This document shows, piece after piece, positions 9,533 through 56,882 of a stretch of DNA of 64,000 nt. How positions within the stretch are numbered: the stretch's first letter is position 1; every line of letters begins with the position of its first letter. This DNA comes from Macrostomum lignano (Eukaryota): contig NIVC01002123.1 in the NCBI GenBank assembly GCA_002269645.1, forward strand, positions 1 through 64,000, written 5' to 3'. The translations under genes were made by a program, and so were the position numbers. Below the pieces are notes generated by a model that was not told the DNA's origin, ran no database searches, and saw nothing but the letters and a program-made list of their open reading frames with translations.

Positions 9533-13257
<3,725 letters not shown>

Positions 13258-18780: not shown

Positions 18781-18864
18781 ACACAATTTCAAACGTAAAA
18801 GTAAGCGAATTTTAAAGGAGCCGCTATAATGCTAAAGAAATTGTCGCACTAACTACTTATTGTC

Positions 18865-19930
18865 TGGTGGATGCTTGCTATTTGGGGATGCTATCTATCT
18901 TGGGGATGCTTGCTATCTGGGGGATACTTGCTATCTGGGCTATGCTTGCTATCTGGGGGATGCTTGCTATCTGGGGTCTGGGGGATGCTTGCTATCTTGG
19001 GGATGCTTGCTATCTGGGGTTGCTTGCTATCGGGGGTCTGGGGGATGCTTGCTATCTGGGGTTGCTTGCTATCGGGGGTCTGGGGGATGCTTGCTATCTG
19101 GGGTTGCTTGCTATCGGGGGTCTGGGGGATGCTTGCTATCTGGGGGATGCTTGCTATTGGGTGGATGCTTGCTATCTGGGCGATGCTTGCTATCTGGGGG
19201 ATGCTTGCTATCTGGGGTCTGGGGGATGCTTGCTATCTTGGAGATGCTTGCTATCTGGGGTTGCTTGCTATCGGGGGTCTGGGGGATGCTTGCTATCTGG
19301 GGTTGCTTGCTATCGGGGGTCTGGGGGATGCTTGCTATCTGGGGTTGCTTGCTATCGGGGGTCTGGGGGATGCTGGCTATCTGGGGGATGCTTGCTATCT
19401 GGGGTTGCTTGCTATCGGGGGTCTGGGGGATGCTGGCTATCTGGGGGATGCTTGCTATCTGGGGTTGCTTGCTATCGGGTGGATGCTTGCTAACTGGGGG
19501 ATGCTTGTCATCTAGGTTGCTTGCTATCGGGTGGATGCTTGCTATCTGGGGGATGCTTGCTATCTGGGGGATGCTTGCTATCTGGGGATGCTTGCTATCT
19601 GGGGGATGCTTGCTATCTGGGGGATGCTTGCTATCTGGGGGATGCTTGCTATCTGGGGTCTGGGGGATGCTTGCTATCTGGGGGATGCTTGCTATCTAGG
19701 GATGCTTGCTATCTGGGGATGCTTGCTATCTGGGGGATGCTTGCTATCTGGGGGATGCTTGCTATCTGGGGGATGCTTGCTATCTGGGGGATGCTTGCTA
19801 TCTGGGGGATGCTTGCTATCTGGGGGATGCTTGCTATCTGGGGATGCTTGCTATCTGGGGGATGCTTGCTATCTGGGGGATGCTTGCTATCTGGGGGATG
19901 CTTGCTATCTGGGGGATGCTTGCTGTCTTG
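18865..19930. repeat. 17-18-bp G-rich minisatellite (GGGGGATGCTTGCTATCT)
   Basis: Read directly; ends ~95 bp before the otopetrin acceptor; explains GDACYL/WGMLAI ORFs. Confidence 0.95.
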
Positions 19931-20025
19931 GGATGATTTCTTTTTGCATTGCACTTCATTTGAGTATTTTGTCTGTTTTCTTTGTGAAGGCTTTATTTCG
20001 CTATTTTTTTGTTACTTACTTGTAG

Positions 20026-21511
20026 AGAACAGAGATTCTATATAGATGTCCCCCAACGGGGGGCGAAGATTGCTAGTTCTATTCTAAACCTCGTTTTAAA
20101 GGTGCTGGGAATCGTCTGCGGTGCAATGGAAATCCGATTCGTGGATTCGTCAGGACTGGACTACACTCCACACGGCATTGTCATGGTCATTAGACACGCG
20201 TTTTTATTCGTCTTTACTGTGCTGCAAACGCGCTTCTCTCTAAAGTACTGCAAAGCGTCCATTCAGCTCAGGCTTGGCAGGTCCTGGCTGCTTCTCTCTA
20301 TTGTGATGGCAGTGAATATTGGCGTGTGGTTCACCACAGTGGGCTTTGAGCTGCAGGATATCGGCAGACCGGACAAAGCAATCGCTAATGGCACCTATTG
20401 CTACGATAAAAATATAGACAAAATCATGAATTTCTTGTACCCCTTCGAAATAGAATACTGCGTCATGTCATCTATAATGGCCTACATGCTGATGTCCAAC
20501 ATGGGCAGGCTGGGGGAATTCCTGCACAGTCAGGTCCGCTCGGGGCTCCTTGACTCGCAAGAAATCGTTCGCAGAGTCAGGCGCATCATGCTGCGGAGTG
20601 GAGGCGCGCAAGGCGGCAGTCACGAAGATCAGGCGCAGTCGCTGTCCGAATTCGGTTCGATCAGAAAGCACTCATGGGTGATCTTGTTTGGCGTTCTGAC
20701 TGTGGTGGCTTCTCTAGCCGTCGTTGCATTCGTCCACTTCGACGAAAATAATCCAGTCCTCAGAATTCTGTTCTTCTCGCTGCAAATGGTGTTGCAATCA
20801 GTTTCTATGCTGGTTCTCGCCGTGCTTTTCTGCTATTTTCGAGTCGATAAGAACCGACGCATCGGCTCCGACAATCTGGTCGACCGGCTGCTTCTGTGGC
20901 TTGGCGTCATCGCTATTGTAGGCAACAACGCTCATAATATTTGGAAAAATGTTAATCAAATTGAAAATGAACTGCCAGTTGATTTTGCGTCAAATCACAC
21001 GGAGGTGAGGATTGAGCTCTCTGAAAACTTTTTCGGCGCCTTTCAGTCAGTTTTGCAAGCGGTGTTCCTGGAGCTGATGCTCGTTGGCTCGTTCACGCTG
21101 GACAACAAACTGCACGAGGCGTTGAAAAGGTTTTTAGGCCGATGCTTTTCAAGCGGGACCCAACCTGAAGAAGCGCAACGCCACCGTCTACGGAATTTTG
21201 TCATTGCCATGCTGAACTTTCTGATTCTGCTCAACTTTTCCGAGTGGGTCCTAAGCGCCCTCTGCTTTCTGTTATTTTTTCAAAGAGAAGAAGACAAACA
21301 CGACAGTTTGTCTCTAATGCTCATGCCGCTGAAGGTTTTCTACAGGTTTCACTCGATCATGAGCATTCAGGACTTTAAGAAGCATCATCTGAGAGTGGAG
21401 ACTGCACGGAACTGTATAGCCGGAGGTGAGTCGGACGGTGAAGCGGGACCTGACGCCGTGCTGATCCATTTCACTGATATTGAAAATGGCGAACTTGAAA
21501 CCAATGGGTAA
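20026..21511 (+). CDS. OTOP: Otopetrin-family proton channel, large exon covering roughly TM3-TM12
   Basis: Motifs LQTRF, AVNIGVW, FLYPFEIEY, LLNFSEW, MPLKVFYRFHS; pyrimidine-rich phase-2 acceptor TTACTTGTAG at 20025; no ATG or TM1-2 in this exon. Confidence 0.88.
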
Positions 21512-22785: not shown

Positions 22786-23982
22786 CTATGCAGGACTGGC
22801 GCTGCTGGCCTCCCACATTAGCGTTCTTGGAGTGTCCATTACAGTAGCGCCCTGCAGCTCGCTATTGGCTAGTAGAGCAGAGTCAGTCCGGTCTGTCCTG
22901 GTGCCGACCAGCTGCAAGTTGCCGCGCTTCAAGCAGGACGCGAGTCCAGAGCATCTGGGGCAGAAGTTGCAGCAGCAGGTGCCAGCAATCGCAGCCGAAG
23001 CGAGCAGGACGCAGAGCAGTGGCATCAACCAGTAGTTTCTATCAGTCAGCTTGACTTCCAGCATTTGAGCATCGTTGTTGCGATCTGCAGTCTTCTCTGG
23101 CGCTCTGTCAGTTCTGTTGTTGTCCAAAAAAGCGTCTGCAGAACTCAGCCGGGTCCGGTCTGCATCGGTCGTTGCGAATCTTCGTGGCCACTGATTTCGC
23201 TCAGCTGATTTGGTATCACCTTGCCATCAGGTTGGTCTGTCAAAAAATGAATAAAAGACAGCTTTCTAGATGGAAGTTAGTTAGGCTGCACTTTGAATTT
23301 CTTTTTGTTTCTATAAATAGCTCGTGCAGGTGCGGGTAATTTCCACGGGTTTTCCTTAGAAATATGGAACTATTTTTTAAATCTGAATTTTAATTGGAAT
23401 TCTCTTATTATAATGATTTAGGCTACTTTAAACTTCGCTAAATCAGATCTAGTACGCTGACGATTAAACAGAATTGGGCCTTGCGGCTAAGGGACACAAC
23501 TCTTTCACGGAAATTCCATGGAATTTTCATGCCAACATGGAACCGTGAGCTAGAAATGCTTTATCTCTGATGCACGGAAATTAATCAAGATAATCAGAAA
23601 AGTCTTCTTAGAATTGTCTGGATCTGGGCCTCTTAAATTTTAGAGTGGTTGTTCTTGCTTTCAGAAGAGGGACTTTAATATCTGCTTTCGGCTTTGCACT
23701 ACTCCTGACATCTAATCAAGTTTATACAGAAAATTCGTCATTAAAGAATGGCGACCTCACCCGAGACGGTAGTCGCGCGGCCTGACGGGTTCGCACATTC
23801 TGGGTGCGCCAGAGAAAACGACTTTAAGAACGCGACAGAGCGGACGTGGGACCTGGACAGGCAAGGCAAAGCCCTGAGTTGGTGTCAGGGTATTCTCCAG
23901 GCTGGCAGTCGCTGACGGGAGTGCAGTCCGCGGCAAGGAGGACCGTCAGAGCCACAGCCAAGTGCAGCACGAAGTGCTTCAT
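22786..23982 (-). pseudogene. Cluster gene A: single-CRD TNFR-like type I membrane protein (frameshifted as assembled)
   Basis: Exon 1 23761-23982: MKHFVLHLAVALTVLLAA..DCQPGEYPDTNSGLCLACPGP-(+1 nt)-HVRSVAFLKSFSLAHPEC..TTVSG|GTGAG; exon 2 starts at 23219 or 23236 (ambiguous), TM YWLMPLLCVLLASAAIAGTCCC. Confidence 0.7.
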
Positions 23983-24606
23983 ATTGTCTTGCGCATTGCT
24001 TTCAGACAGGTTTATCAAAAATGCGCTGCGACATTGGGCCTTTTCATATTACCAATTCCATAACCAGAATCGGTTCGGAATTCCAAGAAAAACAGCAGTA
24101 TAACTATTAAACTCTGTTAATATTTGACTGCCTTAACAACCTAACTTAGCACGATTTTTCACTTTCTTCTTGGCGATTGTCATTCAATAATAAAAACTTT
24201 ATAGCACGTATCTCCCTCTAGTTATGGAGACAAAAAGTTATACTTCACAAATTGGTTCTGGTTCTGGAACCAGAACAAGCAATATGAAAAGGCCCATAGA
24301 GCTGGGCGGGGTACAGATACAGAAGAATGAATAAGGGGAATCTACGGAAAAACCATGGAATGAACGGACGGAATCTAAAAATAGACATTAGCAATCTTGC
24401 TATTTTTAGATTTTGTACACTTGGACAATTCAGAACTTACAATAAATAATTTTTCTAGAGGTGAAAGACCGTGCAAATCAGAAAGGGAATGCTGGCCTTA
24501 TATACACCAGTAACATAATTCGGGATTTTGGAAAGCGAGCTCATTAATTTGACATTCCAGCTATGGAGAGCCCAGCATGGAGATCAAACCCTCCACAGCA
24601 ATGTTT

Positions 24607-25871
24607 TTATACGACAGAAACGCGGGGCTGAGTCTCGACTATCGGCATCTGGGGGCTGGTGGTGCTCTTCAGCCCCACCAGCAGCGCCCGAGCTTCCGGC
24701 TCACTGGCGGGCGCCACTGCAGCCTCCGAAGTGTCGGCTTTGCTGTCGCATGCGAGCATCTTGCGACACACCGCAGGGCGCAGTGCAGATGCGATGCCGC
24801 ATCCAGCCAGCAGCAGCAGCAGTAGGGACAATGCCACCAATACTACAGCAGCCCATGATGGCAGTGTCTGTGCCGGGTTCTCGGTGGACGAGCTCACAGT
24901 CGACAGTTTTGAGTCTGCTGGGCTCGAGGCTGCAGACAATTGTATTCAGACTTTTCGATTAGTTTAGTTGTATTGTAAATAAAGTCAAGTCAGAACTTTA
25001 TTGTGACACAGTAAAGCACAACCAACATTGCAGGCTAAAATGCCTGTTTTATAGAGAAACTGTTTATTTTCGATCGTCTGGCTCACCCATCCCCACCCCG
25101 CGCTAGCAAAGTACATTCAGCGAGAGAGTGAGGGCATCAAAACAACTTAACCCAGCACCCGCCCCCGGCGCGCACGCAGGCAAATTTACCACTGCACATA
25201 TTGCATGTGTACTCAGCAACACCGAAAAGTCGCCACCACAGAAGATTCCATCTGTGGGTCGCCACTTTTGAGAATGCAAGTAAAGAGTCTCTTAATCTTT
25301 GCGAGAGACGCAGCTCAGCTACGCCGCGGCAGACTTGAGTTGAGGAATGATGAAGTGGGGGGAGCGGTGTGCGAGGGTTGGACGGATTAAAGCTACCCCG
25401 ATCAGTTTTCTCGTATCGATTATTCCAGAATAGTCCATGAGAAATTGCTCACTGGCGCATAGAGTGGCGACTGTTCAATGTTGCTGAGTATAAATACAGC
25501 AATATGATTATTGCTGTGCACGCATGCAGTTTCTACTCACCGTCAGACCTTACGGTGCTTGCAATCCAGTCTTTAAGAGAGGCTGTGAAACCAGCTGTAC
25601 CCGTTGAGTCACTGAATGACGGCGACGGCGTGAATGCAGTTGACGTGATTGACGCAGAAGTTGCTGCTGATTTGTCCTTACATCCGGGATGCAACTCCAA
25701 GAAATCAGTTTTGAAGTCCGAAGCGGGGAGCTCAGGGCAGGTGGCGCAGCCAATGCCAGCCAACTCGTACTGGCCTGCGGGGCAGTTCAGCTTGCTGGCT
25801 AGGGCTGCTCCCACCGCCGGCCACAGCGTCAGCAGGACAATCAAAGTGGACGGAGCGATAGCAGAACGCAT
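24607..25871 (-). CDS. Cluster gene B: single-CRD TNFR-like receptor, 217 aa (exons 25541-25871, 24607-24929)
   Basis: Signal peptide, CPAGQYELAGIGCATCP..FKTDFLELHPGC, S/T stalk, TM WAAVVLVALSLLLLLLAGCGIA, ends RVSVV; phase-1 GTGAG..TCTGCAG intron is in frame. Confidence 0.85.
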
Positions 25872-25987
25872 GTTAGTGCAATACTAGCGGCTTCCGCTGC
25901 AAAAGATACCCATCAATCTACACGCAAGCAATCCATTTGGAAGAAGTTATTGCTATAAAACTTTAGGGTCAGTCCACGTTTTATCCA

Positions 25988-25997
25988 GGGAATTCCC
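25988..25997. promoter_or_regulatory. Perfect palindromic kappaB-type site GGGAATTCCC ~120 bp upstream of gene B
   Basis: Matches the GGGRNNYYCC consensus; function inferred. Confidence 0.4.
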
Positions 25998-27434
25998 AAG
26001 GACCGCCCACAGAAGTTCCGAGATAAAAAATAAATGTACATCTGGTCTACGATATTACAAGCGTACATAGTCCAGCTGTGTACATTGGGTGTACACTGGG
26101 TGAACCAGTTCAGAAAACAGCCCGAAAGCCTCTTCAGACGAAAGCTCATGAAAGCAACAATAAGATTGTTTATTATGACAACCAATGGAAACAGAAATTA
26201 AGCAAATATCTTAATTTGAAACTGCAGCGAAATCGGAAAATCGCCAACGAGGCAGAACGCAGCCCTTAAAACACTGCGGCTGGGTGAGGCCTACGATCTC
26301 AAACCAGCTCTAACCCCCACAGAGCATGAGCACCAAGCAAGCGTGCGAGGCGGAGTAATCACTAAAGCCGGTTTGCAAAGTTGTAAACCAAGTCATTAGT
26401 GAATCAGTCCAGGGGACAACGAGCAATTGGCTGAGCAATGACAGCACGCAAAAGCCTCGAAACCAGGGGTCTGCAAATTCCGTCCATCGGGCCACCTGCA
26501 GCCCGGAAGTTTCCCTATCCGGTCCTGGGGTCCTTTGAAACTTCAAAATAGCAATTCGGCCCGCTCAAGGTTTGTGTTTCTTCTCGGCTCTCTGTTTGGT
26601 TCTTTCCGCTCTCCCTTCTCCTCTCATCTCTCCCCTCACCTCGTCTCCTCTCTTCTGTCATCTCTTCTTCGTCCTCTCCCTCCCCTCTCCTTTACTCACT
26701 CATCTGGCTCGCAGCAGATTTAGATTATTTTTCTGGTCCTTGAGATAAAAATTTTTCCGATCTTTGCTCCAAGTCCAAACCGAAGCAAACAAAGAGAGGG
26801 AGTCAACAGCAGCGTCTTTCACTTTAAATACAACTCTACCTGATCGGTCAACTGACTGGGTAACGCCTGCGTCTTGCTGCTTCTGCTTCAGCTCGGGCAC
26901 CACAGCGGGCTCCTGCAGCACAGCCTTCTCTGACCAAAACTGACCACAGGTAAATGAGCATTTTAATTTATAAAACTTTTCTGAAGCAAGTCATGTATGA
27001 TTTTGGCGAAGTGACTTTTCTAAAAAACGGCCTGTATTTTACACAATTTTACACACTTCATAGGGTAATATGTGCGATGCCAGACAATTGTAAAACGGTA
27101 TTTTACAGCGTAACAGGGGCAAAGTTCGGAGCATACAGGCGATTAAAGTGCTTGTGTTCGCATATTTTTTTGCTATCCATAGCTGATTGGATCACTGGAT
27201 CATCTCTGTAGAAAGTTCCATTTTCAGATAGATCGTATTTTCGCTTCATCACAGGGTGAAACTCGAATCCGCTCGCGCTTCGTCAACTCCCCGATGTCGC
27301 GTCAGAAACTCTGAATCGTCTGGCACTGGACTTCCGGTTGGATTTTCAAAAAGCAGCAGTCAGGTGGAGCCGTAACGAGTGTGAAGTATCTGGAAGTTTC
27401 GTCTATAGACGGTATCTATCTAGTTAGCCACTGC

Positions 27435-29300
27435 TTACACTGTAGCAAACTCTTCCTTTTGTTCGAACCTGTAGAGCCTGGGATTTTCTATCATACTGGG
27501 TTCAGTGCGAGCAGCCTGGCCTAAGTCTTGGTCCTGGTCCTGGTCCTGGTAATGGTGCTGGTCTTGGTCCTGATCCTGGTCCTGGTCCTGGTAATGGTGC
27601 TGGTCTTGGTCCTGATCCTGGTCGTCTTCCTGGTCCTGCTCCTGGTCTTGGTCCTGTTCCTGGTCTTGGTCCTGGTCTTGTTCCTGGTCTTGGTCCTTGT
27701 CTTGTTCCTGGTCTTGATCCTGGTCTTGGTCCTTGTCTTGTTCCTGGTCTTGTTCCTGGTCTTGTTCCTGGTCTTGGTCCTTGTCTTGTTCCTGGTCTTG
27801 GTCCTGGTCTTGGTCCTTGTCTTGTTCCTGGTCTTGTTCCTGGTCTTGTTCCTGGTCTTGGTCCTGGTCTTGTTCCTGGTCTTGGTCCTGGTCTTGGTTC
27901 TTGTCTTGTTCCTGGTCTTGTTCCTGGTCTTGACTGTCTTGGTTTCGGTTCTCCCGATTGAGAGGCATCATCTCACTTGTCGGCGTGCTACTCTTGTTTT
28001 CGTGCCTAAAACAAGCAGTCAGCCTTTGGTGCACAAGACCAATGAGACAGACGGCAACGATGACCAGGATTAATGACAGTGGCATCAAGACTGGCCAGGG
28101 AAGTTGGTTAGCCGAACCTTCGCCATAGCTAGCTGCTGTAAGAACTGAACTCGACTCCGGAGCATTAGTTGTATGCGCGTCTGTATTGGTTGAAGCACCG
28201 ATAGGATTAGGTTTAGGATTAGCATTAGCACCAGCGCTAATTGGTGTTTTTGGCGGCACCTTGTCTTCGGTGTTGTGAAGCTCCGTTGAACTAACTGCAA
28301 GGGCATTTAAAGTTATATTTATATTGTAACTAAAAATAGTTATTGTATTTGTTCACGGGGGACACCCGTGGATTTTCCTTACAAACATGGATCCAAAAGA
28401 CAATGAAACCAAAATTGTACACTTGTACACTTCCAGTGACCTTGAATTGTATAGTGCTGCATTTGATATGACCAAATTAAGTTTCGGGTAACGAAAAACC
28501 AGATGATAGAAACGATTTTACTAAATTTAACTTGACTGCTCGCTTCTGTTTAACTCCGGTTTCTACCAACATGGAACCAAAATTTACCCACTGTAGTAAC
28601 TGCAGAATGCCCACAGAATTTACATACTGCCAGCATGGAACCAAAATCTTCAAGTTTTACCTGCACTATAGTAACTGCAGAATGACCACAGAATTTCCAT
28701 ACTGCCAACATGGAACCAAATTCTTCAAGGTTTACCCACTATAGCAACTGCAGAATGCCCACAGAATTTACATACTGCCAACATGGAACCAAATTCTTCA
28801 AGGTTTACCCACTATAGCAACTGCAGAATGCCCACAGAATTTACATACTGCCAACATGGAACCAAAATCTTCAGGGTTTACCCACTGTAGCAACTGCAGA
28901 ATGCCCACAGAATTTACATACTGCCAACATGGAACCAAATTCTTCAAGGTTTACCCACTATAGCAACTGCAGAATGCCCACAGAATTTACATACTGCCAA
29001 CATGGAACCAAAATCTTTGAATCAAAAATGGAACCAAGGGAGCAAATACAACAAAGAAAGCTCACCCTCGGTAGTGGCAGTCCAGGTGGCCGGAGGCGGA
29101 TACGGGCACTCCTTGTGCTGGTTCGCGAATGTCTTCAGATAGTCTTCCGTATTTCCCTCCAGGCTGGGGCAGGGCAGGCAGTCAACCAAAGCATCTGGAT
29201 ATTCGCCAAGCTCGCATTTCGGCCTGACGACCGGTGCGCCGAGTGTTTGAATGGCTGAGCAGGCCACTAACATAAAAAGCAGCAGTTTGCTCAGCTGCAT
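27435..29300 (-). CDS. Cluster gene C: single-CRD TNFR-like receptor, 364 aa (exons 29066-29300, 27435-28294) with D/Q/E repeat tail
   Basis: MQLSKLLLFMLVACSA..CELGEYPDALVDCLPCP..YLKTFANQHKEC; TM WPVLMPLSLILVIVAVCLIGLV; tail (QDQDQE)n..MIENPRLY..FATV; phase-1 intron is in frame. Confidence 0.85.
28560..29020. repeat. 73-bp tandem repeat (~6 copies) in the intron of gene C
   Basis: CCAACATGGAACC recurs at 28705, 28778, 28851, 28924, 28997. Confidence 0.93.
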
Positions 29301-30270
29301 ACTTCAATTCAGTTCAGTTCAGGTAGATAGCTCGTATATAGTTAGGCAGAGAGGAGAGAAGATAATATTCGAAAGTTTTAATTGGAGCGCACCTATTCAA
29401 CCTAGTTATTATAGTCTACAATACAGAAGCAGAAATTCCTTCGAATTTCCGTGGAATAGCGGTGGAATTGCCGAGATTTTTTAGTGTACGCTCGTGCGCT
29501 CGTATATTGTGGAAAATAGCCCATGTGCGTGCTGAAAGCTAGTTTCTAAAAAAAGGCTCAACGTATTAATTGCTTACTAAGAAACCATCCATTCAATCTA
29601 GAGCAGCAAAGATATGCCCACGCTCGTGCATGTCGAAGTTTTGCCCCCCCGCCCCCCACGAACTTCTGAGGACTGCTCACTAAATAGTTGAAATAAAATA
29701 AAAATTGTATTTCGCTGTAGGACAGAAAATTATTTTTTTAAAACTGAGAATGATTAGAAATTTAAGCATTTTGTATTTTGTGGTTAATCAACAAAATTAA
29801 TGATTGATAGTACATCTGCTTCTAGAAAATATATGAGTAGCTACGAGCTATTTACAAGGAAAGATTTGGAATGAAGTTAATGTTTGAATCTTCATAAATA
29901 ATGACGCATTCGAATATTTATTAGAATTATTATAAACACATGACGAGCGCAATCCTGTTACTAATGGTATGAAACATTTTTGTTTATTTGGATGAATGCT
30001 CGCTGTTAGAAAGTTGATGAGCACGATTCACATTTTTTTGTAGGAGAAACTCGAACTCCAACCACCCAACCGGCTATGCAGACTGTCGTTAAAGCCAGGC
30101 TTCGATTTCAGAGTCTTGGCAGAAGGGGATTTGGTGTTACAAACTCTGAATCGCCTTCGCATTGACCTTCCGCCACAGCACGACCACTCGCGGAGCCGCA
30201 ATGAGTCAATTTTTTCAAATTATTCCTCTGTGAACGCAGTCGAATGAGCACTACTTGTAACTCGAAAAGT

Positions 30271-33199
30271 TTAATCCCTTTCAGACTCGAAAAGCTTGGG
30301 ATTTTCTGTCATGTTGGGATTCTTGCGATGAGGCTGTGGGTCTTGATTCCGTCTGTGGCTTCGGTCCGGGTCTTGGTCGTTGCTTGGGTCTTGGTTGTTG
30401 CTTGGGTCTTGGTCGTTGCTTGGGTCTTGGTCGTTGCTTGGGTCTTTGTTGTTGCTTGGGTCTTGGTCGCGACTGTGGCTTAGGACTTGATTTAGGCTTT
30501 GACTCTGTTCTCTGTCCAGCTGATTGGGGGGAGCATTCTCACATTTCAGGCGTCTGCTCAGCCGTTTTAAACAAGCCCGCAGATATCGGCGACAGATGTA
30601 GCGCACAATGGCGAGGAAAAAAGCCAATATGACGACAACTGAAGCAATGAGCAAGTGTCTTTCCACGACTCCACCATTTCTAACAGTTGTATCAACTGGG
30701 CTCGATGCTGGAGGTTGAGTCGTAGACGCTTCGGTTTTGGTTGAAGCACCAACAGTAGGAAAGCTGCTGCCGCCTGCTGGCGTTGTTGGCGGCACTTGGC
30801 TTGTTTTCGAAACTGTAAGGCAGTTGAAGTCATATGTTCTTGTTTCTAAAAATAGACTTTGTGCACCCGTGGGATACCCATGGATTTCCCTTCGCCAACG
30901 GGGTTCTAATGACTAATTAAAATGAATCGATATGTTTAACTCTAATTTAATCAACTTTGCCTGTTCGCCTTGCCTATGTCCCTAGTGTTAAGCTCGCGGA
31001 GATTATTGGTAGCGTCAACTCCGCTACCATAGACAAACTGTCGGATTAGACATTCCGAAACGTCCCTCTGCACATAGTTGCACTTCTTCGTCTAGGCCGA
31101 TTACCCTCGCTCGCTTTGGTGTTAGATGAAAACCTGATTTGGCACTCAATTTCATGGCGGCGTCGATGCACTGCCTGGTTAGGACAAACTCGTTGTCCTT
31201 GAAGATGGACCAATCATGCAGAAACTTTGTTTGTAGGTGGAACTGGATACTGGCGACAAAACCTTTGATCGTGGCAGGCGGGTACATATATCTCCGTTGT
31301 CCTTGCGCAGTTCAAGCAGAAAGCACTGCAGCACGTAGTCCCATTCCTTCTTGCTCCACTCGAACATATCCTTCACAACTTTCAACTGAGCAGTTTGGCG
31401 CACTCGCCAGTCAGTATACCAAGCGCACAGTTTATTCCAATTGCTACGAACCTTTGTGGCCGTTGTTTTTGGAATTCGCGACTCTAAATTCGGCAAGCCG
31501 GACGTCAACGTTGGTGCTAGTGCTTTGCACTGTAGACGCTTCTTCATTGGTAATCGTTCGCATCACTTTCATTACAATCGTCAGCGGTTAGCTCCTCCAT
31601 TTTGGTAAAATTTGTGGCTTGTTTATTTCACAGCTTGCTTCTCTCTTCCCAAACCATCAGTCCTCTTTGATTTAGACTTAGTATTTTACCATAGACAATA
31701 CAGGGAGCGGAGATTTAAATCTCCGCCGGAGATTAACTCGTGCTAAATATAGATTGCCTGGAGGCTCACAGGCTGTTGATTAAATTAAAATAACCCACTG
31801 AAACTCTGAGATACTACTCTATGGCAAAATCTCCTCGGCTTCGCCTCGGAGATTCTGCATAGAGTATCTCCTCGTTTCAGTGGTTTATTACACGTATCAT
31901 ACTAAGTTCCGGGGATACAGTTTACAAGGACAACTTAAGTAGAAGGACGCAACACTCGAAATCTATGGTAAATGTTTTGAAGGCAACTTTTCTACACTAC
32001 AGAGATAGGAGGTTTTAATTTTTTCAGCACAAAAATTGTTATTGCTTTCGATAGGAGGCAGACACAATGTTCATCTTTTGATATGCTGTGCCTTCCGTAT
32101 AGCTCTATTGGGATTCACAAAGCATTTTTTCAGAAATTAGGATTCTATGTTCAATTATTATTCTACGTACATTTGCATGTCTAAAATGTCTAAAATGACA
32201 CGGCTCAGCTCATTGGTTTTATGAATCCATTTTATAATTCTTAGCTGACTGTGTAACAATATGTGTAACCGAGATGATAAAATAAATTCACAAAACCAAA
32301 AATTCGAGCTGTGTCATGCATTTTTATGATATTTAGGTACAGGAAATATACGTAGAATAAAAAATTAGCATAGAATCCTAATTTTCTGAACAAGAAGCTT
32401 TATGAATATCAATAGAGCTATAAGAAATGCACAACATATCAAAAGATGAGCATTGGATCTGCCTCCTATCGAAAGCAATAACAGTTTTTGCGCTGAAAAA
32501 AATTAAAACCTTCTGTCTTTGTGTATTTTTTCAGAAATGACTGCCTTAAAATTTTTTCCAAGAAACGAGGTTTCCGGTCCTTCTACTTAAGTCGTCCTCG
32601 GCTCTTGTATCTAAAAATAGACTTGTACACCCGTGGGATACCCATGGATTTCCCTTCGCAAACATGGATCTAATGACTAATTAAAATTGATCAATATGCT
32701 CAACTCTAATATCATACTTTCCGGGGGAAACAGTTTATCGAAAGAGTGACCCCTAAGATATTAGAGTTGTTCAGGTAAAGAATTTCAATTAACTTGTGAC
32801 GTAAATATAGAATATGACCAACAATAACTACACAATGTCTACAGGGCTCCCATACCAGCCACATGGAACCAACAGCTCAGAGTGTAGCCAAAAATACGTA
32901 CACAATGTTCACATGGTTTCCCATGGCATGAACTCACCTCTGACAGTCGTAGTCCTGGTGCTCTCGACCGGAGTAGGCGGCGGCGCATACGGACACTCGG
33001 GGTGTACTGATGCGAACGACTTCAGATAGGACTCCGGGTTTTCAAGAAGGCGGGGGCAGGGCAGACAGCCAGCCAGGTCCTCATCGAAATACTTACCCGG
33101 CTTGCATCTGTGCTGCTTAATCGGATTGGCCGGTAACGGACTGGCTGAGGAGACCAACAAAACTAGCAACAGAAAGCTGCGTTTGTCTTTTAATCGCAT
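30271..33199 (-). CDS. Cluster gene D: single-CRD TNFR-like receptor, 267 aa (exons 32938-33199, 30271-30812)
   Basis: MRLKDKRSFLLLVLLVSSASP..CKPGKYFDEDLAGCLPCP..YLKSFASVHPEC; TM LLIASVVVILAFFLAIV; tail (DQDPSN)n..MTENPKLF; phase-1 intron is in frame. Confidence 0.8.
31024..31560 (-). mobile_element. Crypton-type (DUF3504/ZMYM-QRICH1-like tyrosine recombinase) DNA transposon fragment in the gene D intron
   Basis: IPKTT..W..W..R..EWDYVLQCFLLELRKDNG-(frameshift)-YPPATIKGFVASIQFHL..IFKDNEF..CIDAAMK..G. Confidence 0.75.
31789..31889. repeat. ~100-bp imperfect palindrome around a CGGCTTCGCC loop
   Basis: AATAACCCACTGAAAC/GTTTCAGTGGTTTATT and GAGATACT..AATCTCC/GGAGATT..AGTATCTC arms. Confidence 0.8.
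31928..32597. mobile_element. MITE with ~220-bp imperfect terminal inverted repeats
   Basis: Left end GGACAACTTAAGTAGAAGGAC and right end GTCCTTCTACTTAAGTCGTCC; inverted similarity continues ~200 bp; another arm copy at 7318. Confidence 0.85.
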
Positions 33200-33888
33200 T
33201 GTCTTCAATTTGTAGTGAGTGAGCTAGCGCAGAAGAGGGCGTGGGCGTTGCAAATCGTGGGCGAATCGTTTTATGCTCATGCGTAGACTTTCCGTGGAAA
33301 GACTATGGAATTGCAGCGGGAAGGCTTTCAAGGCTAAGTGTACATTTTTAGTTTCTAAAATAAGCAACTACGAGTATTCGTTTTCGTACGTAAAATGCAT
33401 TCCCTTAGCAGACAAAATTCAAAACTGGCATCGTCTTTGTACTATATTGCTAATCTGAAGACAGCACTTATCTACAGACTTTCAATAATATAGGAATAAG
33501 TTTTAAGACCAATATCAATATTGATGAGGTAAAATTTTGCTAAAACAAACTGTAAAATCGATCAAGTTTTCGGATTTTTTTATCATTGTTGAATTCAGCT
33601 GAAATTTGATACCCATTATTAGGAACCTAAGCAGCAGGTTTCTCAGAGCATACAGTCATTTTCATCTAGTTATCCTGACATTTGGCATTCTCTGGAACCA
33701 CGAGTTGAAGCAAACCCTTAGATCGGCTTCCTGAAACGGGTCCAGGACATCTAGGAGCTCCTCCCTAGAGTCAAGTCGCCTTACCTTCAAGTTCTTCTCC
33801 ATTTTGGGAAAGTCGAGCGACTAAGTTAGATGCGGCAGCTGCTGAAGCTGCGTTGTCGTGGTGAAGGAAGATGCGCCTTCTCCCTCGA

Positions 33889-34381
33889 CCATGCTCACTG
33901 TGGCACCATGCTCACTGTGGCACTATGCTCACTGTAGCACCATGCTCACTGTGGCACCATGCTCACTGTGGCACCATGCTCACTGTGGCACCATGCTCAC
34001 TGTGGCACTATGCTCACTGTAGCACCATGCTCACTGTGGCACCATGCTCACTGTGGCACTATGCTCACTGTAGCACCATGCTCACTGTGGCACTATGCTC
34101 ACTGTGGCACCATGCTCACTGTGGCACCATGCTCACTGTGGCACCATGCTCACTGTGGCACCATGCTCACTGTGGCACCATGCTCACTGTGGCACCATGC
34201 TCATTGTAGCACCATGCTCACTGTGGCACCATGCTCACTGTAGCACCATGCTCACTGTGGCACCATGCTCACTGTGGCACCATGCTCACTGTGGCACCAT
34301 GCTCACTGTAGCACCATGCTCACTGTAGCACCATGCTCACTGTGGCACCATGCTCACTGTGGCACCATGCTCACTGTGGCA
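33889..34381. repeat. 17-bp tandem repeat (CCATGCTCACTGTGGCA) x29
   Basis: 493 bp = 29 x 17. Confidence 0.95.
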
Positions 34382-35289
34382 CCATGCTCGAGCAACACTG
34401 GCTGCAAGATGCCGCAGGCCTCGCGACGAAGCTTCAGCAGCGCATCCTCGTCACTGGTGACCCACTGACGGCTCTGCTCTCCAATCTCCGGGTTGTAGAA
34501 GTAGACCCGGTTTTCATTATCCGTGGGGCTGTGAGGTTATCGTCCACCAGTTCTACAGCGCATTTTGGTGGCCAATGGAAGCAGAAATGTTGCACGCAAG
34601 CAGAGAGCATTCGTCTGAGAAAATTAGTGTAAAATTTCGCTGCCTTGCTTCATTTTTAATTGCATATTTCTAAAAAATTAATACTCGCAAGCACCCCTCA
34701 TATGATGAAAAATAATTTTAAATACAAACTAGAAAGAATATTAATAACTTGAGACTTGAGCTTAGATACAATGTAATGAGTAATTTTAGCACTGGCCATC
34801 CAGCTTCAATGATGACGCACAAAAAATTGTGAGCACACGAGCCAGCACAAATCCTAGCCAATAAAACACAATTAAAAGCTTTAATATGTAACTCACCTGC
34901 CGCACTACAACTGTTCATTGAGTTAAACAAAACGAAGTTATACAGAGCCTTTAATTCAAACAACAAAATCTCTTTTCTTTCCATTGGCATAGCTCGCAGT
35001 CTGCCTGAGCTACTGCCATTTTGCTTCTTTTTCTGTCTGAGCATTTATCTGAAACTGCAGAGCTGCCCGCGGGAAAATGTACACAATTTTCCAGGAAAAA
35101 AACAAAAAGCAAAGCTATAGACAATGTGAGTATGAGTTGCCGTGAGCAATGTGAGCAAGACTCCGTTTTTAGCTAGCAAAAACTACATGACTATTTTCGG
35201 GTGCTCGCTGAGCAATGGCTATTTTTAGATTTTGGAAATGCCATGGAATTTCTGGGAATTTTGAGCTGCTGTGGAATTGACTGAGCCCG

Positions 35290-38659: not shown

Positions 38660-38845
38660 ATGGGTCAGTCAATAGATGGGTCAGCAATACAGCAAGTGGG
38701 TCAGCACACACAGATGGGTCAGTACACACAGCAGGTGGGTCAGCACACAGGTGGGTCAGCATACACAGCAGATGGGTCAGCACACACACAGCAGGTGGGT
38801 CAGCACACAGGTGGGTCAGCACACAAACAGCAGGTGGGTCAGCAC
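38660..38845. repeat. Short GGGTCAGCACACA repeats just after the LRR1 stop
   Basis: Read directly. Confidence 0.8.
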
Positions 38846-40414
38846 GAGAAGTAGCGGCACAGCTCGAGCCGCCGCTCGAAGCACGCAGCGGAGCAGAAGT
38901 GCAGCATGACGGGCACCGTAGCGACGCCGCCGTTACCGTCGGAGTCGGCTGGTGCGGGCAGCTCGTAGCAGGCGGCCAGGTGCCGCGGGTGCACGGGCAG
39001 CGGGCAGGGGGCCACCCGCGGGTCGCAGTGACGCCTGCAGGCGGCGCAGGCAGGCATTGCGGCCAGGTCGTCCAGGAGGTGCCACGGCAGTGGCGGCGGC
39101 GACTTTGAACGAAAATCGACAACCAGCCGACGAACGACGGCCAGACAGAGCGAGGCGAGGTCGGGCACGGGCAGGCGGACGGGGAGGCGGCCGGAGTCGC
39201 GGCAGCTGAACGGCTGGCCGGAGCCAATGGACAGCCGGTCGAGTCGGACAGCCGGCCGAGGCAAAAGGCGAAGGCGGTTGCCGTCGAGGGCGATGGAGCG
39301 CAGCAGCGGCACGGCAGGCAGGCAGTCGGGCAGGCGGGTCAACCGGTTGCCGCAGAGGTCGAGGCTTCGCAAGGCGGCGAGGCGGCCGAGCTCAGAGCCG
39401 AGCCAGGCCAAGCAGTTGTCGCGGAGGTCTAGAACCGCCAGACTGCTGGCAAGGGGGCCGGCGGCACGGAGTTCGAATCCTGGAAATGTCACCAGGCGAT
39501 TGCCAGGCAGGCTGAGCTCCGTTAGCGGCAGACGATTGATTGCGTCCGGCAGAGACTCGAGCTGGTTGCCATGGATACGTAGGACGCTGAGCTGGCCTAG
39601 CCGGCAGAGGCGGGCGTCGAAGCGACGCAGGCCGATCGGGCCCAGGCTGAGCTGCACCAGGTGGGGCGGGAAGTCACCGGCGGAAGGGTAGGCCTCCCGG
39701 CTGGACACCTGGCGGGGCGGGCGATGAAATGATTCGCTGGATTGGCTCGCGAGCTTCGGTTGGGGTCACCCGAGGGGGGCCAGAAGTGCTAGTCCGCATA
39801 TACTAAATCTTCAGTTCGGAGGGGGTCGCTTTAGCCGAGTGCGTTAGTGCTACAGAGTTAAGCATAATTGGCCGTGGTTAGTATGCAGCTAATTAGGCCT
39901 GCCGAGATCACCTCCTAAGGCAACAATGCAAAATTAGGCGGAGCTCCAATTCTGCCCACAGGGCAGCAGCTCCGACCTGTCCTGAACTCACCGTCAGCTG
40001 AGTCTGCGTACGCGCCCGCACCCGTCGCTTGTCCAACGGCGTCAGCGAGGAGTAATCCAAGCCGGAGCCTAGCAGTAGGCGTCGGTCAACGCCACGACCT
40101 CCGGCTACGTCGCCGAGAAGGCGAGCCAAGCCGGCCAGCTGGCGAGGCTCGGCGCCGCTAATGAGCAGCTGCACGTGCGGCCCGGTCAGGCACAGGGTGA
40201 GCCGGCCCTCGGACAGGAAGCGGGTGTGCAGCCGCTCGATGTTGGCGGCGGACACCGGCCAGGCCTGGCAGCCGCTGCCGCCCCACTGGCAGGCGAGCCG
40301 ATAGCGACCGTCGCGGCCGCACAGGCTCAGCAGCGCCCGGCGGGCTCGCGGAGGCGGGCCGCTACTGCCGGTGCCGCCGGTGAGCAGCACGGCCAGCTGA
40401 CAGTCGATTCGCAT
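38839..40414 (-). CDS. LRR1: Leucine-rich repeat protein 1 (PPIL5), CRL2 substrate receptor, 430 aa (exons 39992-40414, 38839-39708)
   Basis: N-terminal PH-like MRIDCQLAV..NIERLHTRFLSEGRLTLCL, TQLT|VSSREAYP..FP, LRRs, BC-box-like VPDLASLC and Cys-rich end, colinear with known LRR1. Confidence 0.9.
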
Positions 40415-40489
40415 TGCGCCGTCCGCCCCCAGTCGTTGCGCTGAATGAATCAAAGCCAAGGAGTTTTAAGTCATCAAAGCCATGGGGTG

Positions 40490-42800: not shown

Positions 42801-45800
42801 TCAGTCAGTAAACAGAAACTCGGTCTCCAGCAGGATGTACTCAACCACCTGATTTTGGAACATCAGGTTGGAGGTCAGGCAGAGGCCGCCATCCGCATCG
42901 CCACTGGCCGGCCAGACCAGATTCGGGCCCATCATCAGGGCGACATTCTGGGAGCTCATCTGGTTGCGCTCGCTGCACTGCACAACCCGGGTGAGATGGT
43001 GGAACAGCAGGCGCAGGGTGTTGTAGTGCGCCGGTGGCAGCGTGCGCAGCACCTGCCGGATTGACTCGCGTTTGGCGCTGGGCTTGGCGCTGGACTGGTA
43101 GTGCTCGGTGATCAGCTGCGGGTGGACAGGTGTCTACTCCCGATGGACAGGTGTCTACTCCCGATGGACAGGTGTCTACTCCCGATGGACAGGTGTCTAT
43201 TTCCGATGGACAGGTGTCTATTCCCGATGGACAAGTGTCTATTCCCGATGGACAGGTGTCTATTCCCGATGGACAGGTGTCTATTCCCGATGGACAGGTG
43301 TCTATTCCCGATGGACAAGTGTCTATTCGCGATGGACAAGTGTCTTAATGGTGCACAGTGAACAGGTGTGTTTTCACAGTGAGCAGGTGTGTTTTCACAG
43401 TGAGCAGGTGTGTTTTCACAGTGAACAGGTGTGTTTTCCACAGTGAACAGGTGTGTTTTCACAGTGAACAGGTGTGTTTTCCACAGTGAGCAGGTGTGTT
43501 TTCCACAGTGAGCAGGTGTGTTTTCACAGTGAGCAGGTGTGTTTTCACAGTGAACAGGTGTGTTTTCCACAGTGAACAGGTGTGTTTTCACAGTGAGCAG
43601 GTGTGTTTTCACAGTGAACAGGTGTGTTTTCACAGTGAGCAGGTGTGTTTTCACAGTGAGCAGGTGTGTTTTCACAGTGAGCAGGTGTGTTTTCACAGTG
43701 AGCAGGTGTGTTTTCACAGTGAACAGGTGTGTTTTCCACAGTGAACAGGTGTGTTTTCCACAGTGAACAGGTGCCTTTATAAGGATGGGCGTGTCTATTC
43801 AGGGTGGACAGGTGTCTATGGTGGAATGTGTTTGCTCAGTAAAATTAGCTGTTTAAATAAACTGTAGACAGGTGTGACAGTGGACATGTTTGTTGACCTC
43901 AGAAAACCTTAGCCTTGTAACAACGAACCTGAAAAGTCGCTGACGGAATCAGTGGCTCTCTCAGCTCTCTTAGAAAAGTTTTCAACGCCGAGGTGAGCAC
44001 GAAGATGTCCCAGCCGGTGGTCAGGTCGTAGTCCTCAGTCTGGTCAACCAGCAGCCGCAGCTTCTGCACGGTGGCCGCGTTGCCGCCCAGCCGGTAGATG
44101 CCCTCAGTCTCCAGGCCGTGGCCCTCGATAGCTTCAATGCAGCGGCTTAGAAAGCGAGGCGCGTCCGAGCGCTCGTGCGCGCAGATCTGGCGCAGGGTGG
44201 AGCCGAACACGGGCTCGTTCCGCACGATGCCTTTCTTCTCCAGCTCGTCCAGCGCCGGCCTACGCCTGAAAAAATCGTTCAGCCTCTGGGCTATGGACAC
44301 TCGCTGCTTGCTGTCGCGGGGCTGCGGCTGCGGCGGAGTCTGCGACTGCTGCTGCTGCTGCTGCTTGCCCCAGCCAGAGTGCGATGAGGCCGACTGCTGC
44401 GGAGTCTGCTGCTGCTGCGAGCTAGGCTGGTACATGCGCTTAGTTGCCAAGTCCTTGGCGTACCTGTGTATGCGGAATTGAAACACACTCGTGAGTGCTC
44501 TGTGTGCTGCCTTACAGAATTGGATCTCCAACTACACTACAGGATCTACCCTAACCTACAGGATCTACCTATCCTACAGGATCTACCCTACCCTACAGGA
44601 TCTACCCTACACTACAGGATCTACCCTACACTACAGGATCTACCCTAACCTACAGGATCTACCCTAACCTACAGGATCTACCCTACCCTACAGGATCTAC
44701 CCTACCCTACAGGATCTACCCTACACTACAGGATCTACCCTACACTACAGGATCTACCCTACACTACAGGATCTACCCTACACTACAGGATCTACCCTAA
44801 CCTACAGGATCTACCCTAACCTACAGGATCTACCCTACCCTACAGGATCTACCCTACCCTACAGGATCTACCCTACACTACAGGATCTACCCTACACTAC
44901 AGGATCTACCCTACACTACAGGATCTACCCTACACTACAGGATCTACCCTACACTACAGGATCTACCCTACACTACAGGATCTACCCTACACTACAGGAT
45001 CTACCCTACACTACAGGATCTACCCTACACTACAGGATCTACCCTACACTACAGGATCTACCCTACACTACAGGATCTACCCTACACTACAGGATCTACC
45101 CTACACTACAGGATCTACCCTACACTACAGGATCTACCCTACACTACAGGATCTACCCTACACTACAGGATCTACCCTACACTACAGGATCTACCCTACA
45201 CTACAGGATCTACCCTAGTCTACCCTGCCATACACGAACTACCGTGATCTAGAGAATCCATTCTACGATTTCATTTCAATCTCCAGAAACACCAAGAGCT
45301 ACTCACTCCAGCGCCAAGCTCCACTGCTTGCGGGCCCCTGGTTCATCCCAGTAGAGCAGCATGTCGCAGTCGGCGCTAGGATACAGATCCGCGTGCCGCC
45401 CAAGCGACGAAGAGTCGTAGCCGGCACTGTCGCCACCGACGCCGCCACCGCCAGCGACGTAGCGAAGCCTTAGCGGTCCCGTCGAAGGATCGTCCGATGG
45501 AAGCGGCGGAGGCGCTGGCGGGCCGCCAGACGGGTCCACCTCGACGGCGGCCACGGCCAGGGCCAGTTCCGGCCGCTTGTCCGAGCGGGACCGGTAGAAC
45601 AGCAGGTCCGGGCCAGTCAGCACCAGGTGGTAGGCCTGCCGCTTGCCGCTGGGTGACTTGGCCGAGGACTTCTTAGACTCCTATGGGATGGCGGAAAGAG
45701 AGTTCAGATTGAGGGGTTCAGGAAGGAGGGAAAAGGATGGGATCAGGAGGGACGGGAATGGGGAAGGAGGGAATAGGATGGGATCAGGAGGGACGGGAAT

Positions 45801-55120: not shown

Positions 55121-56882
<1,762 letters not shown>

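Follow-up and report, generated by a model that had tools for sequence, protein, structure and literature searches.

The 64 kb stretch of Macrostomum lignano DNA analyzed here (the window) contains four adjacent copies of a small surface-protein gene, all on the minus strand, of which three are intact (B, C and D) and one is broken (A). From the highest coordinates downwards, the exons and the features lying in their introns are the following.

32938..33199, minus strand: gene D exon 1, with signal peptide, 4-Cys domain (C32-C69, 33106..32993) and start of the stalk; donor G/GTGAGT, phase 1
30947..31894, no strand assigned: 948-bp insertion in the gene D intron, with broken ORFs and a faint QRICH1-like match; not in the other assembly
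30271..30812, minus strand: gene D exon 2, with S/T/P-rich stalk, TM helix (~30604..30654) and tail with DPSN[DN]Q repeats (~30355..30471)
29066..29300, minus strand: gene B exon 1, with signal peptide and 4-Cys domain (C29-C65, 29216..29106); donor G/GTGAGC, phase 1
28583..29017, no strand assigned: minisatellite in the gene B intron, 73-bp unit, 5.9 copies
27435..28294, minus strand: gene B exon 2, with stalk, TM helix and ~190 aa tail including a DQ/EQ coding microsatellite (~27500..27941)
25541..25871, minus strand: gene C exon 1, with signal peptide, 4-Cys domain (C30-C64, 25784..25680) and S/T-rich stalk; donor G/GTGAGT, phase 1
24607..24929, minus strand: gene C exon 2, with stalk, TM helix and ~55 aa tail ending in SVV before the stop
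23761..23982, minus strand: gene A exon 1, with signal peptide, 4-Cys domain (23907..23795) and a frameshift at ~23837-23841
22786..23135, minus strand: gene A exon 2, with short non-mucin linker, Cys-rich TM and juxtamembrane segment and ~60 aa tail; acceptor ttctgcag/AC, phase 1

All four copies encode a signal-like hydrophobic N-terminal segment, the 4-Cys motif reported in a preliminary description of this DNA, and a single strong TM segment. The motif has no further copies in the window, and chance is a poor explanation of these four: the expected number per window is 0.005 for the N-terminal and 0.43 for the C-terminal part of the motif, against four observed in each case. Genes B, C and D can be spliced into uninterrupted two-exon ORFs, each intron being of phase 1 and having GT/AG ends. 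In other words, the preliminary description of four same-strand two-exon genes was right about layout and intron phase, but only three of the four are intact, the frameshift of A falling within the domain itself. Similarly, the S/T stalk it attributed to every gene is found in B, C and D, where S, T and P make up 41-47% of the residues, but not in A, whose stalk is short and has an S+T+P content of 20%. As to the short tail without a death domain, a Pfam search of the full-length proteins at E ≤ 1 found neither a death domain nor any other relevant domain (matches to Ctr and MGC-24 were dismissed as composition-driven), but the tails of B and D, at ~190 and ~110 aa, are hardly short. No TRAF-binding motif of the form (P/S/A/T)x(Q/E)E or PxExx(Ar/Ac) was seen in the tails, which were read by eye only. 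The B tail, which consists mostly of DQ/EQ repeats, ends in ...MIENPRLYRFEQKEEFATV and the D tail in ...MTENPKLFESERD, each followed by the stop codon, and the two have a C-terminal M-[IT]-E-N-P-[RK]-L-[YF] in common beyond their divergent repeats.

The lesion in gene A is a shift of one nucleotide between C-L-A-C-P and F-L-K-S-F, such that frame 0 stops at ...CPGPTSALSRS, the remainder of the motif lies in frame 2, and one extra base restores read-through. Since this frameshift lies within the domain and recurs without a single base of difference in an independent assembly, gene A is probably a pseudogene. A word-indexed protein search found no public protein for it. We considered a 31-nt mini-intron (G/GT...AG) bypassing the frameshift and rejected it, as it deletes the conserved FLKSF and leads into another frame. 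As a separate observation, a weak upstream donor (CAG/GTCCCA, phase 1) could join the A hairpin directly to A exon 2, which is unsupported speculation.

The word-indexed protein searches returned proteins of M. lignano only and, since these are the sole close proteins, the earlier guess of a flatworm origin was correct. Public gene models for D, for B and for a hybrid of B exon 1 with C exon 2 are spliced at the junctions predicted here. Namely, the D junction TVR/VSKTSQ is identical in UniRef entry A0A1I8I8D5, and the donor of B exon 1 is used both by the public B gene model and by the hybrid PAA55265.1, whose 3' exon is ~90% identical to C exon 2. For C exon 1, no public protein containing the exon was found by the same type of search. 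The Mlig_3_7 gene models were built from RNA-seq (PMC5730564). One haplotype is without B exon 2 and C exon 1, and one carries the hybrid of B head and C tail in frame, annotated from RNA-seq. Other differences between the assemblies concern repeats and insertions: in the second assembly the copy of D exon 2 is intact with two repeat units fewer and the minisatellite in the B intron has 12.8 copies, and the 948 bp inserted into the D intron are probably a piece of a mobile element. A0A1I8I8D5 and the public B gene model have frame-shifted C-termini. A literature search found no mention of the locus tag. Both A0A1I8I8D5 and PAA55265.1 are named "TNFR-Cys domain-containing protein" in UniRef, presumably on the basis of a match to the PROSITE TNFR-Cys profile, given UniProt naming practice. 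The novelty asserted for the domain is weakened by this existing label.

How far does the family reach, and how is it changing? When 1.84 billion proteins were searched with an HMM, relatives spanning the full domain came from M. lignano only. Matches to the family profile in other organisms cover only the N-terminal C-x2-G-x-Y...C-x2-CP hairpin, none of them extending beyond position 34 of the 52 in the profile and all but one ending by position 26, and they occur in proteins with Ephrin_rec_like, TNFR_ELAPOR1 (ELAPOR-type), NCD3G or CBM_14 repeats. At the DNA level, similarity between the paralogues is nearly gone, B and D having only ~73% identity over 100 nt of exon 1. What has been kept in register in all copies are the four Cys and the G, Y, P, F and H of the motif, together with the signal peptide, the TM helix and the intron phase. 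Between the two haplotypes, the Cys domain differs by 2 synonymous changes and no nonsynonymous one, and stalk and tail by 15 nonsynonymous and 5 synonymous changes, in both cases too few for a formal dN/dS; in stalk and tail the pattern appears close to neutral. The notion of a lineage-specific, fast-diverging family is borne out by the confinement of the HMM relatives to M. lignano and by the haplotype changes in stalk and tail.

These observations bear directly on one alternative, namely that the cluster is decaying or non-functional, a set of young orphan ORFs drifting neutrally and annotated through fortuitous transcription. We consider this quite improbable: the frameshift of A in two assemblies, the loss of B exon 2 and C exon 1 from one haplotype, the frame-shifted public C-termini, the 15 to 5 ratio in stalk and tail and the lack of HMM relatives outside the species all fit it, but paralogues old enough to have diverged as far as B and D still hold the motif residues in register, all copies keep signal peptide, TM helix and intron phase, the Cys domain has no nonsynonymous change between haplotypes, and the C-terminal motif of B and D has outlasted the repeats before it.

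The resemblance of the 4-Cys domain to TNF receptors is more delicate. The A1 module, C-x2-G-x-[YF]-x(4-9)-C, is present in all four copies, but direct reading gives four cysteines per domain in every copy, and not the six cysteines and three disulfides of the canonical CRD. Pfam TNFR_c6 (PF00020) aligned to D over model positions 1-18 of 39 with E = 0.027 and 15.3 bits, against a cut-off of 29.4, and to A below significance (E = 0.13), with no match on the B and C domains; BCMA-Tall_bind (PF09257) reached E = 0.058 and 13.9 bits, against a cut-off of 27, over positions 1-17 of 37. Since these matches stop at the hairpin, so does the similarity. What is more, CBM_14 scores about as well on D as TNFR_c6. 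Profile and single-sequence searches of PDB sequences found no TNFR, and a match to IL-15 at E = 0.55 was dismissed as chance. Nor did Pfam point to the known GCC2/GCC3 module: Ephrin_rec_like (PF07699) gave no match to the four domains at E ≤ 10 or to the full-length proteins at E ≤ 1, and each protein has a single domain.

The AlphaFold model of D (pLDDT 70) consists of a beta-hairpin and one helix, as does that of B (pLDDT 80). In a Foldseek search of 350,542 PDB chains, BCMA ectodomains came top for both models, followed in the case of D by Fn14, BAFF-R, TACI and Grindelwald, with none of the matches significant (E ≥ 0.7); Cys-rich domains of mGlu receptors were also in the list, and a search of viral structures gave nothing. 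The hairpins of D and B superpose on that of BCMA at 0.5-1.3 Å over 18 residues (0.5 Å and 44% identity for D), while alignments of the whole CRD comprise 37-41 columns at rmsd 4-6 Å and TM 0.3-0.4 (E ≥ 0.7). The predicted hairpin tip carries Asp-Ala-Leu in B and Asp-Glu-Asp-Leu in D, and it is at this tip that BCMA, TACI and Fn14 have their ligand-binding motif, Asp-x-Leu or Ser-x-Asp-Leu (PMC8024323). The second module, with one predicted disulfide and one predicted helix, is unlike the B2, C2 and D2 modules, and the earlier claim that it fits no recognised TNFR B/C/D module is upheld: this half resembles no known module, with no match outside M. lignano past profile position 34. The claimed A1 likeness, for its part, is backed by the hairpin motif, by the sub-threshold Pfam matches and by single-CRD TNFRs heading the Foldseek list, but none of these matches is significant and they concern only ~18 residues. 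The TNFR interpretation was overstated to this extent, and the hairpin is also seen in repeat proteins of the Ephrin_rec_like, ELAPOR and CBM_14 types. A kinship of the 4-Cys head with the smallest TNF receptors is in this sense suggested rather than proven.

Comparison with named systems makes this more concrete. BCMA (TNFRSF17) and TACI CRD2 (A1 + D2 modules) likewise belong to type I proteins with one small N-terminal CRD and no death domain, and share with the M. lignano proteins a helical second module after the hairpin and, in B and D, tip residues of the Asp-x-Leu type. D and BCMA have the hairpin spacing C-x4-Y-[FP]-D-x5/6-C-[LI]-P-C in common, and 8 of 18 residues are identical between them. 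BCMA, however, has 6 Cys and a D2 helix-loop-helix with two disulfides, whereas the M. lignano domain has 4 Cys with, in the models, one helix and one disulfide in its second module, which together with 13.9 bits against 27 places it outside PF09257. Superposition of the full domains is poor (rmsd 5-6 Å, TM 0.33-0.37), and the mucin stalk is absent from BCMA. Moreover, BCMA is a vertebrate protein, and so are its ligands, BAFF and APRIL. Among invertebrates, Grindelwald is a one-CRD TNFR missed by standard TNFR HMMs (preprint 10.1101/2024.07.27.603686). Grindelwald (Drosophila) and Fn14 (TNFRSF12A) combine a hairpin with a C2 helix-loop-helix in one CRD. The outer C2 disulfide (Cys57...Cys77) spans ~20 residues, as compared with 19-21 between C3 and C4 here, and no entry in the list has a higher query TM-score than Grindelwald (0.41, 6zsy), but neither protein is a significant match (Foldseek E 6-7). 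Grindelwald has 8 Cys (X2 + C2) and Fn14 has 6, while the M. lignano domain is without the inner disulfides and has one predicted helix; its proteins show no detected counterpart of the Veli- and Traf2-binding regions of Grindelwald. BAFF-R (TNFRSF13C; Foldseek 8zuj, 2hfg, 1osx) also has only four Cys in a very small, hairpin-centred ligand-binding domain, but there both disulfides interlock inside the hairpin in an X2 module (PMC8024323), whereas Cys spacing and model here imply sequential modules, with C1-C2 in the hairpin and C3-C4 around the helix. Finally, Ephrin_rec_like (GCC2_GCC3), ELAPOR TNFR-like and NCD3G repeats have the C-x2-G-x-Y-x(5-8)-C-x2-CP hairpin in common with the family, but form multi-repeat arrays with extra Cys pairs, and their matches to the profile never include its helix half. 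Pfam at E ≤ 10 assigned none of the four proteins to these families.

The reading we tentatively favour is that of an M. lignano-specific tandem cluster of small type I membrane glycoproteins with a minimal TNFR-clan CRD, a lineage-specific, fast-evolving family whose binding of TNF ligands is plausible by analogy. In the predicted structure, the first module of the CRD would be an A1-type beta-hairpin held by one disulfide (C1-C2), and the second, starting two residues later, an amphipathic alpha-helix (Y/F-x3-F-x3-H) tied back by C3-C4. A mucin-like S/T/P stalk of ~80 aa would lift this Cys cap off the membrane, and beyond the single TM helix lies a tail of low complexity that evolves fast and has no death domain. 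By analogy with BCMA, TACI, Fn14 and Grindelwald, hairpin tip and helix may bind a protein ligand. The best candidates would be the endogenous Eiger-like TNF trimers of M. lignano, which parasitic flatworms do not possess; TNF ligands have been described in M. lignano (PMC7519573) and are also listed in a preprint table. The proteins might then act as receptors, co-receptors or decoys. As both exons lie on phase-1 boundaries, heads and tails of the genes could be swapped. The immune or cytokine role put forward earlier is pure inference. The strongest version, that of genuine ultra-minimal TNF receptors whose 4-Cys CRD binds expanded Eiger-like Macrostomum ligands through a BCMA/Fn14-type Asp-x-Leu tip, strikes us as unlikely.

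A possible alternative, and one to be taken seriously, is that these are lineage-specific mucin-like surface glycoproteins that share just a generic Cys hairpin, are unrelated to TNF ligands, and possibly serve in the glycocalyx, in adhesion or in a fast-evolving reproductive or epidermal function. The hairpin-only matches outside M. lignano, the CBM_14 score on D, the S/T/P-rich stalks with their weak match to sialomucin MGC-24, and tails that are coding microsatellites with no signalling domain found all agree with it, as does a published survey listing a single, NGFR-like TNFR in M. lignano (PMC7519573). It accounts less well for the fact that the best PDB matches of both AlphaFold models are single-CRD TNFRs and not Ephrin_rec_like or chitin-binding folds, for the absence of Pfam Ephrin_rec_like matches at E ≤ 10, for the one membrane-distal domain of a type I protein, the arrangement of BCMA, Fn14 and Grindelwald, in place of a repeat array, and for the DxL-type residues at the hairpin tip, which favour the TNFR-like reading.

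The TNF-ligand question is directly testable, since M. lignano is amenable to transgenesis and RNAi. If the proteins do not bind TNF ligands, they would simply add to the fast-evolving surface-mucin families that are restricted to a single species, and be of limited general interest; even so, they would caution that the UniProt "TNFR-Cys" label stands on ~18 residues. According to the published survey of TNF signalling in flatworms, each species has a single NGFR-like receptor, and endogenous TNF ligands are confined to the free-living ones, M. lignano among them (PMC7519573). Binding of these ligands would make the TNF system of Macrostomum richer than has been described, and the family a third independent case of a pared-down TNFR ligand-binding domain, after BAFF-R/BCMA/Fn14 and Grindelwald. 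Should they be ultra-minimal TNF receptors in the full sense, the single-CRD design of hairpin plus helix would predate vertebrates and arthropods, free-living flatworms would have TNFRs beyond the one NGFR-like receptor described so far, and new receptors would be created as phase-1 exons exchange heads and tails.

The minus strand of the window between 22786 and 33199 carries four genes, with D upstream; three of them (B, C and D) give clean ORFs of two exons separated by a phase-1 GT/AG intron, as listed here with the repeats found in two of the tails:

33199..32938 and 30812..30271, minus strand: gene D, two-exon ORF of 267 aa
29300..29066 and 28294..27435, minus strand: gene B, two-exon ORF of 364 aa
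25871..25541 and 24929..24607, minus strand: gene C, two-exon ORF of 217 aa
23982..23761, minus strand: gene A, exon 1, frameshifted
27500..27941: coding microsatellite of the B cytoplasmic tail, ~70 DQ/EQ dipeptide units
30355..30471: coding microsatellite of the D cytoplasmic tail, six DPSN[DN]Q units, two fewer in the other haplotype

In B, C and D, a hydrophobic, signal-like N-terminal segment is followed by the 4-Cys motif C-x2-G-[KEQ]-Y-x6/7-C-x2-C-P-x6/8-[YF]-x3-F-x3-H-x2-C, a stalk of ~80 aa (S+T+P 41-47%), one strong transmembrane (TM) segment and a cytoplasmic tail. A six-frame regular-expression search of the 64 kb window returns exactly four copies of the motif, those of A-D, the expectation from shuffled sequence being 0.005 for its N-terminal and 0.43 for its C-terminal part, as against four observed of each. 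The preliminary description of four such genes is for the most part right, although it missed the frameshift in exon 1 of A. It was right that death domains are absent, the Pfam scan of proteins A-D finding neither a death domain nor any other domain, but not that the tails are short: that of B measures ~190 aa, chiefly the DQ/EQ coding microsatellite, and that of D ~110 aa, with the DPSN[DN]Q repeats. By eye, the tails show no TRAF motif. Past the divergent repeats, B (27435..27490) and D (30271..30320) have M-[IT]-E-N-P-[RK]-L-[YF] in common near the C-terminus, while the C-termini of B (-ATV) and C (-SVV) resemble class I PDZ ligands.

Protein searches returned entries from Macrostomum lignano exclusively, in keeping with the flatworm origin that had been guessed. 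Three of these belong to the family: P0001 (UniRef A0A1I8I8D5) is 98% identical to D; P0002 (PAA55265.1, BOX15_Mlig029935g1) has B exon 1 spliced to a C-type exon 2; and P0003 (A0A1I8IT47) combines B exon 1 with the first part of B exon 2 (...VSSTELHNTEDK) and ends in a shifted frame. The donor sites in all three are exactly those derived here. Moreover, P0002 belongs to the Mlig_3_7 gene set, which was built from RNA-seq data with StringTie/TACO and TransDecoder (PMC5730564), and consequently at least the junction between B exon 1 and C exon 2 has transcript support. C exon 1 and all parts of A are absent from the public proteins searched with genes A and C. UniRef names P0001 and P0002 'TNFR-Cys domain-containing protein', and P0003 (121 aa, B-type) 'Laminin N-terminal domain-containing protein', a name without sequence support, the C-terminus of this entry being the B stalk read in a shifted frame.

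How far does the family reach? In the HMM check that had been proposed, a HMMER search of the ectodomain profile A2 against 1.84 billion representative proteins, whole-domain matches were confined to P0003 and P0001, that is, to M. lignano. The other eight matches at E<=0.001 cover the hairpin region only (the N-terminal half of the domain), with many repeats per protein; seven of the eight end by profile position 26 of 52 and one (P0005) reaches position 34, and the Pfam families of the eight are Ephrin_rec_like, TNFR_ELAPOR1_6th, NCD3G or CBM_14. The hairpin half is a widespread motif, and the helix half (Y-L-K-S-F...H-P-E-C) has no detectable relative outside the family in the same 1.84 billion proteins. 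As far as public proteins show, the family is restricted to M. lignano. A check for a GCC2/GCC3-type module led only to a likeness of the hairpin to Ephrin_rec_like proteins, the helix half matching none.

The isolated D domain gives sub-threshold Pfam matches to TNFR_c6 (E=0.027), CBM_14 (0.054) and BCMA-Tall_bind (0.058), and the isolated A domain to TNFR_c6 (E=0.13), with the TNFR_c6 and BCMA-Tall_bind matches spanning the first 17-18 model positions only. The earlier formula of a TNF receptor (TNFR) A1 module plus an unfamiliar second half holds. Profile and single-sequence searches of PDB sequences found no TNFR. AlphaFold2, given a five-row alignment, models D (pLDDT 70) and B (pLDDT 80) alike, with a beta-hairpin and, after it, a single alpha-helix of 10 residues. 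Within this domain of roughly 45 aa, disulfides C1-C2 and C3-C4 would be expected. When the D model was compared with 350,542 PDB chains in Foldseek, BCMA ectodomains came first, with 18 hairpin residues superposed at 0.5 A (44% identity), and Fn14, BAFF-R, TACI and Grindelwald followed, with Cys-rich domains of mGlu receptors among them; for the B model, the top three were BCMA. The Foldseek check thus put BCMA at the head for both models, but with all E >= 0.7 and a whole-domain rmsd of 4-6 A, and we regard these matches to single-CRD (cysteine-rich domain) TNFRs as consistent pointers, not proof. In human BCMA, C-x4-Y-F-D-x5-C-[LI]-P-C stands in the same register as in D, with 8 of 18 residues identical, which the Foldseek identity corroborates.

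BCMA, TACI CRD2, Fn14 and Grindelwald combine a beta-hairpin with a helical module, and the human receptors carry a ligand-contacting Asp-x-Leu or Ser-x-Asp-Leu at the hairpin tip (Palmerini et al., PMC8024323); at the predicted tip, B has D-A-L and D has D-E-D-L, and no other part varies as much between the paralogues (PDALVD, FDEDLAG, ELAGIG, PDTNSGL). In the second module, the two Cys enclose a span of 19-21 residues, close to that of the outer disulfide in Grindelwald C2 (Cys57...Cys77); the inner Cys pair is missing and a single helix is predicted. This module corresponds to no named TNFR module, but can be taken for a helical one in reduced form. The alternative, an unrelated, mucin-like surface protein with only the hairpin in common, is somewhat less probable than a ligand-binding protein of the TNFR clan, with a probability well short of even.

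Gene A is a separate matter. Namely, frame 0 of its exon 1 reads ...C-L-A-C-P-G-P-T-S-A-L-S-R-S-stop and the conserved ...V-A-F-L-K-S-F-S-L-A-H-P-E-C lies in frame 2, so that one base is missing at about 23837-23841. Since this region is identical base for base in L001 (NIVC01002778.1, GCA_002269645.1), a second genomic copy of the locus treated as the other haplotype and as an independent assembly, the frameshift is genuine, which makes A a probable pseudogene. Exon 2 still has an open ORF (acceptor at 23135), and the stalk is short and non-mucin-like, contrary to the S/T stalk once attributed to A.

L001 is colinear with the window (LRR1, D, B, A, otopetrin-like gene; identity 91-99%), but lacks window 28583..25510, a stretch with the B intron's 3' part, B exon 2, the spacer and C exon 1. 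With both introns in phase 1, the deletion has left an in-frame gene with a B head and a C tail, annotated in NIVC01002778.1 as PAA55265.1; TAA(T) microhomology marks the junction (L001 11229), and 13.6 kb of satellites with periods of 23 and 18 bp (L001 12388-24844) have accumulated in the hybrid intron. In the window itself, AAACATAAAAGAGCCACCATGTC and TCTGGGGGATGCTTGCTA arrays lie downstream of A at 17688-19932, adjoining the otopetrin-like gene. The D intron of the window contains an insertion of 948 bp (30947..31894), absent from L001, with broken ORFs and a faint QRICH1-domain match, probably a mobile-element fragment; the same intron holds a 121-bp direct repeat (30838-30958 and 32603-32720). 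Between window and L001 copies, the Cys domain shows 0 nonsynonymous and 2 synonymous substitutions, and stalks and tails 15 and 5. These counts are too small for a formal test, and agree with a head under constraint and a stalk and tail almost free of it. The paralogues are old: B and D can still be aligned only over ~100 nt in exon 1 and 77 nt in exon 2, at 73%. That the whole is a decaying orphan cluster, a reading to be weighed with the probable pseudogene A on one side and the apparently constrained head on the other, we consider improbable.

The surroundings of the cluster are as follows:

20009..21511, plus strand: uninterrupted 500-aa ORF directly downstream of A, matching Otopetrin (PF03189, E=7e-11), apparently an otopetrin-like gene without introns
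38839..40459, minus strand: LRR1-like protein (LRR_8 here, PH_LRR1 in the L001 gene call)
43899..44531, minus strand: RhoGAP-domain exon
55121..56071, minus strand: large exon of S-adenosylhomocysteine hydrolase
11120..12442: long overlapping Ala-rich ORFs on both strands, no Pfam match, coding status of either doubtful
189-1179, 33888-34389, 35311-38208, 40482-41094, 43354-43773, 44532-45217, 48992-50708, 60327-61266 and 62106-63502: minisatellite arrays

Minisatellite arrays (periods 17-73 bp) are unusually dense in the window, and many of them account for spurious long entries in the ORF list; a 21-mer array of 2.9 kb shows an extreme GC skew (-0.74).

What might these proteins do? A single NGFR-like TNFR was reported in each of 30 flatworms, M. 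lignano included, and TNF ligands in free-living flatworms only, M. lignano having at least 10 such sequences (Bertevello et al. 2020, PMC7519573), while a 2026 preprint using custom HMMs lists 6 Eiger, 16 Wengen-type and 1 Grindelwald-type proteins in this species (10.1101/2024.07.27.603686). We tentatively read the family as ligand-binding proteins of the TNFR clan, with a probability not far short of even. The 4-Cys head would be displayed on an O-glycosylated stalk and, by analogy with minimal TNFRs, may bind a protein ligand through hairpin tip and helix, endogenous TNF trimers being the most plausible putative partners. Signalling is obscure, given the lack of a death domain and of a TRAF motif recognizable by eye, and the proteins are as likely to act as decoys or co-receptors as to signal; the preliminary description overstated both the novelty and the function of the family. 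The modular phase-1 design of the genes is demonstrated by a natural swap of head and tail, and the family is best filed, as a variant, among the single-CRD, hairpin-plus-helix domains of the TNFR clan, with functional TNFR membership putative.
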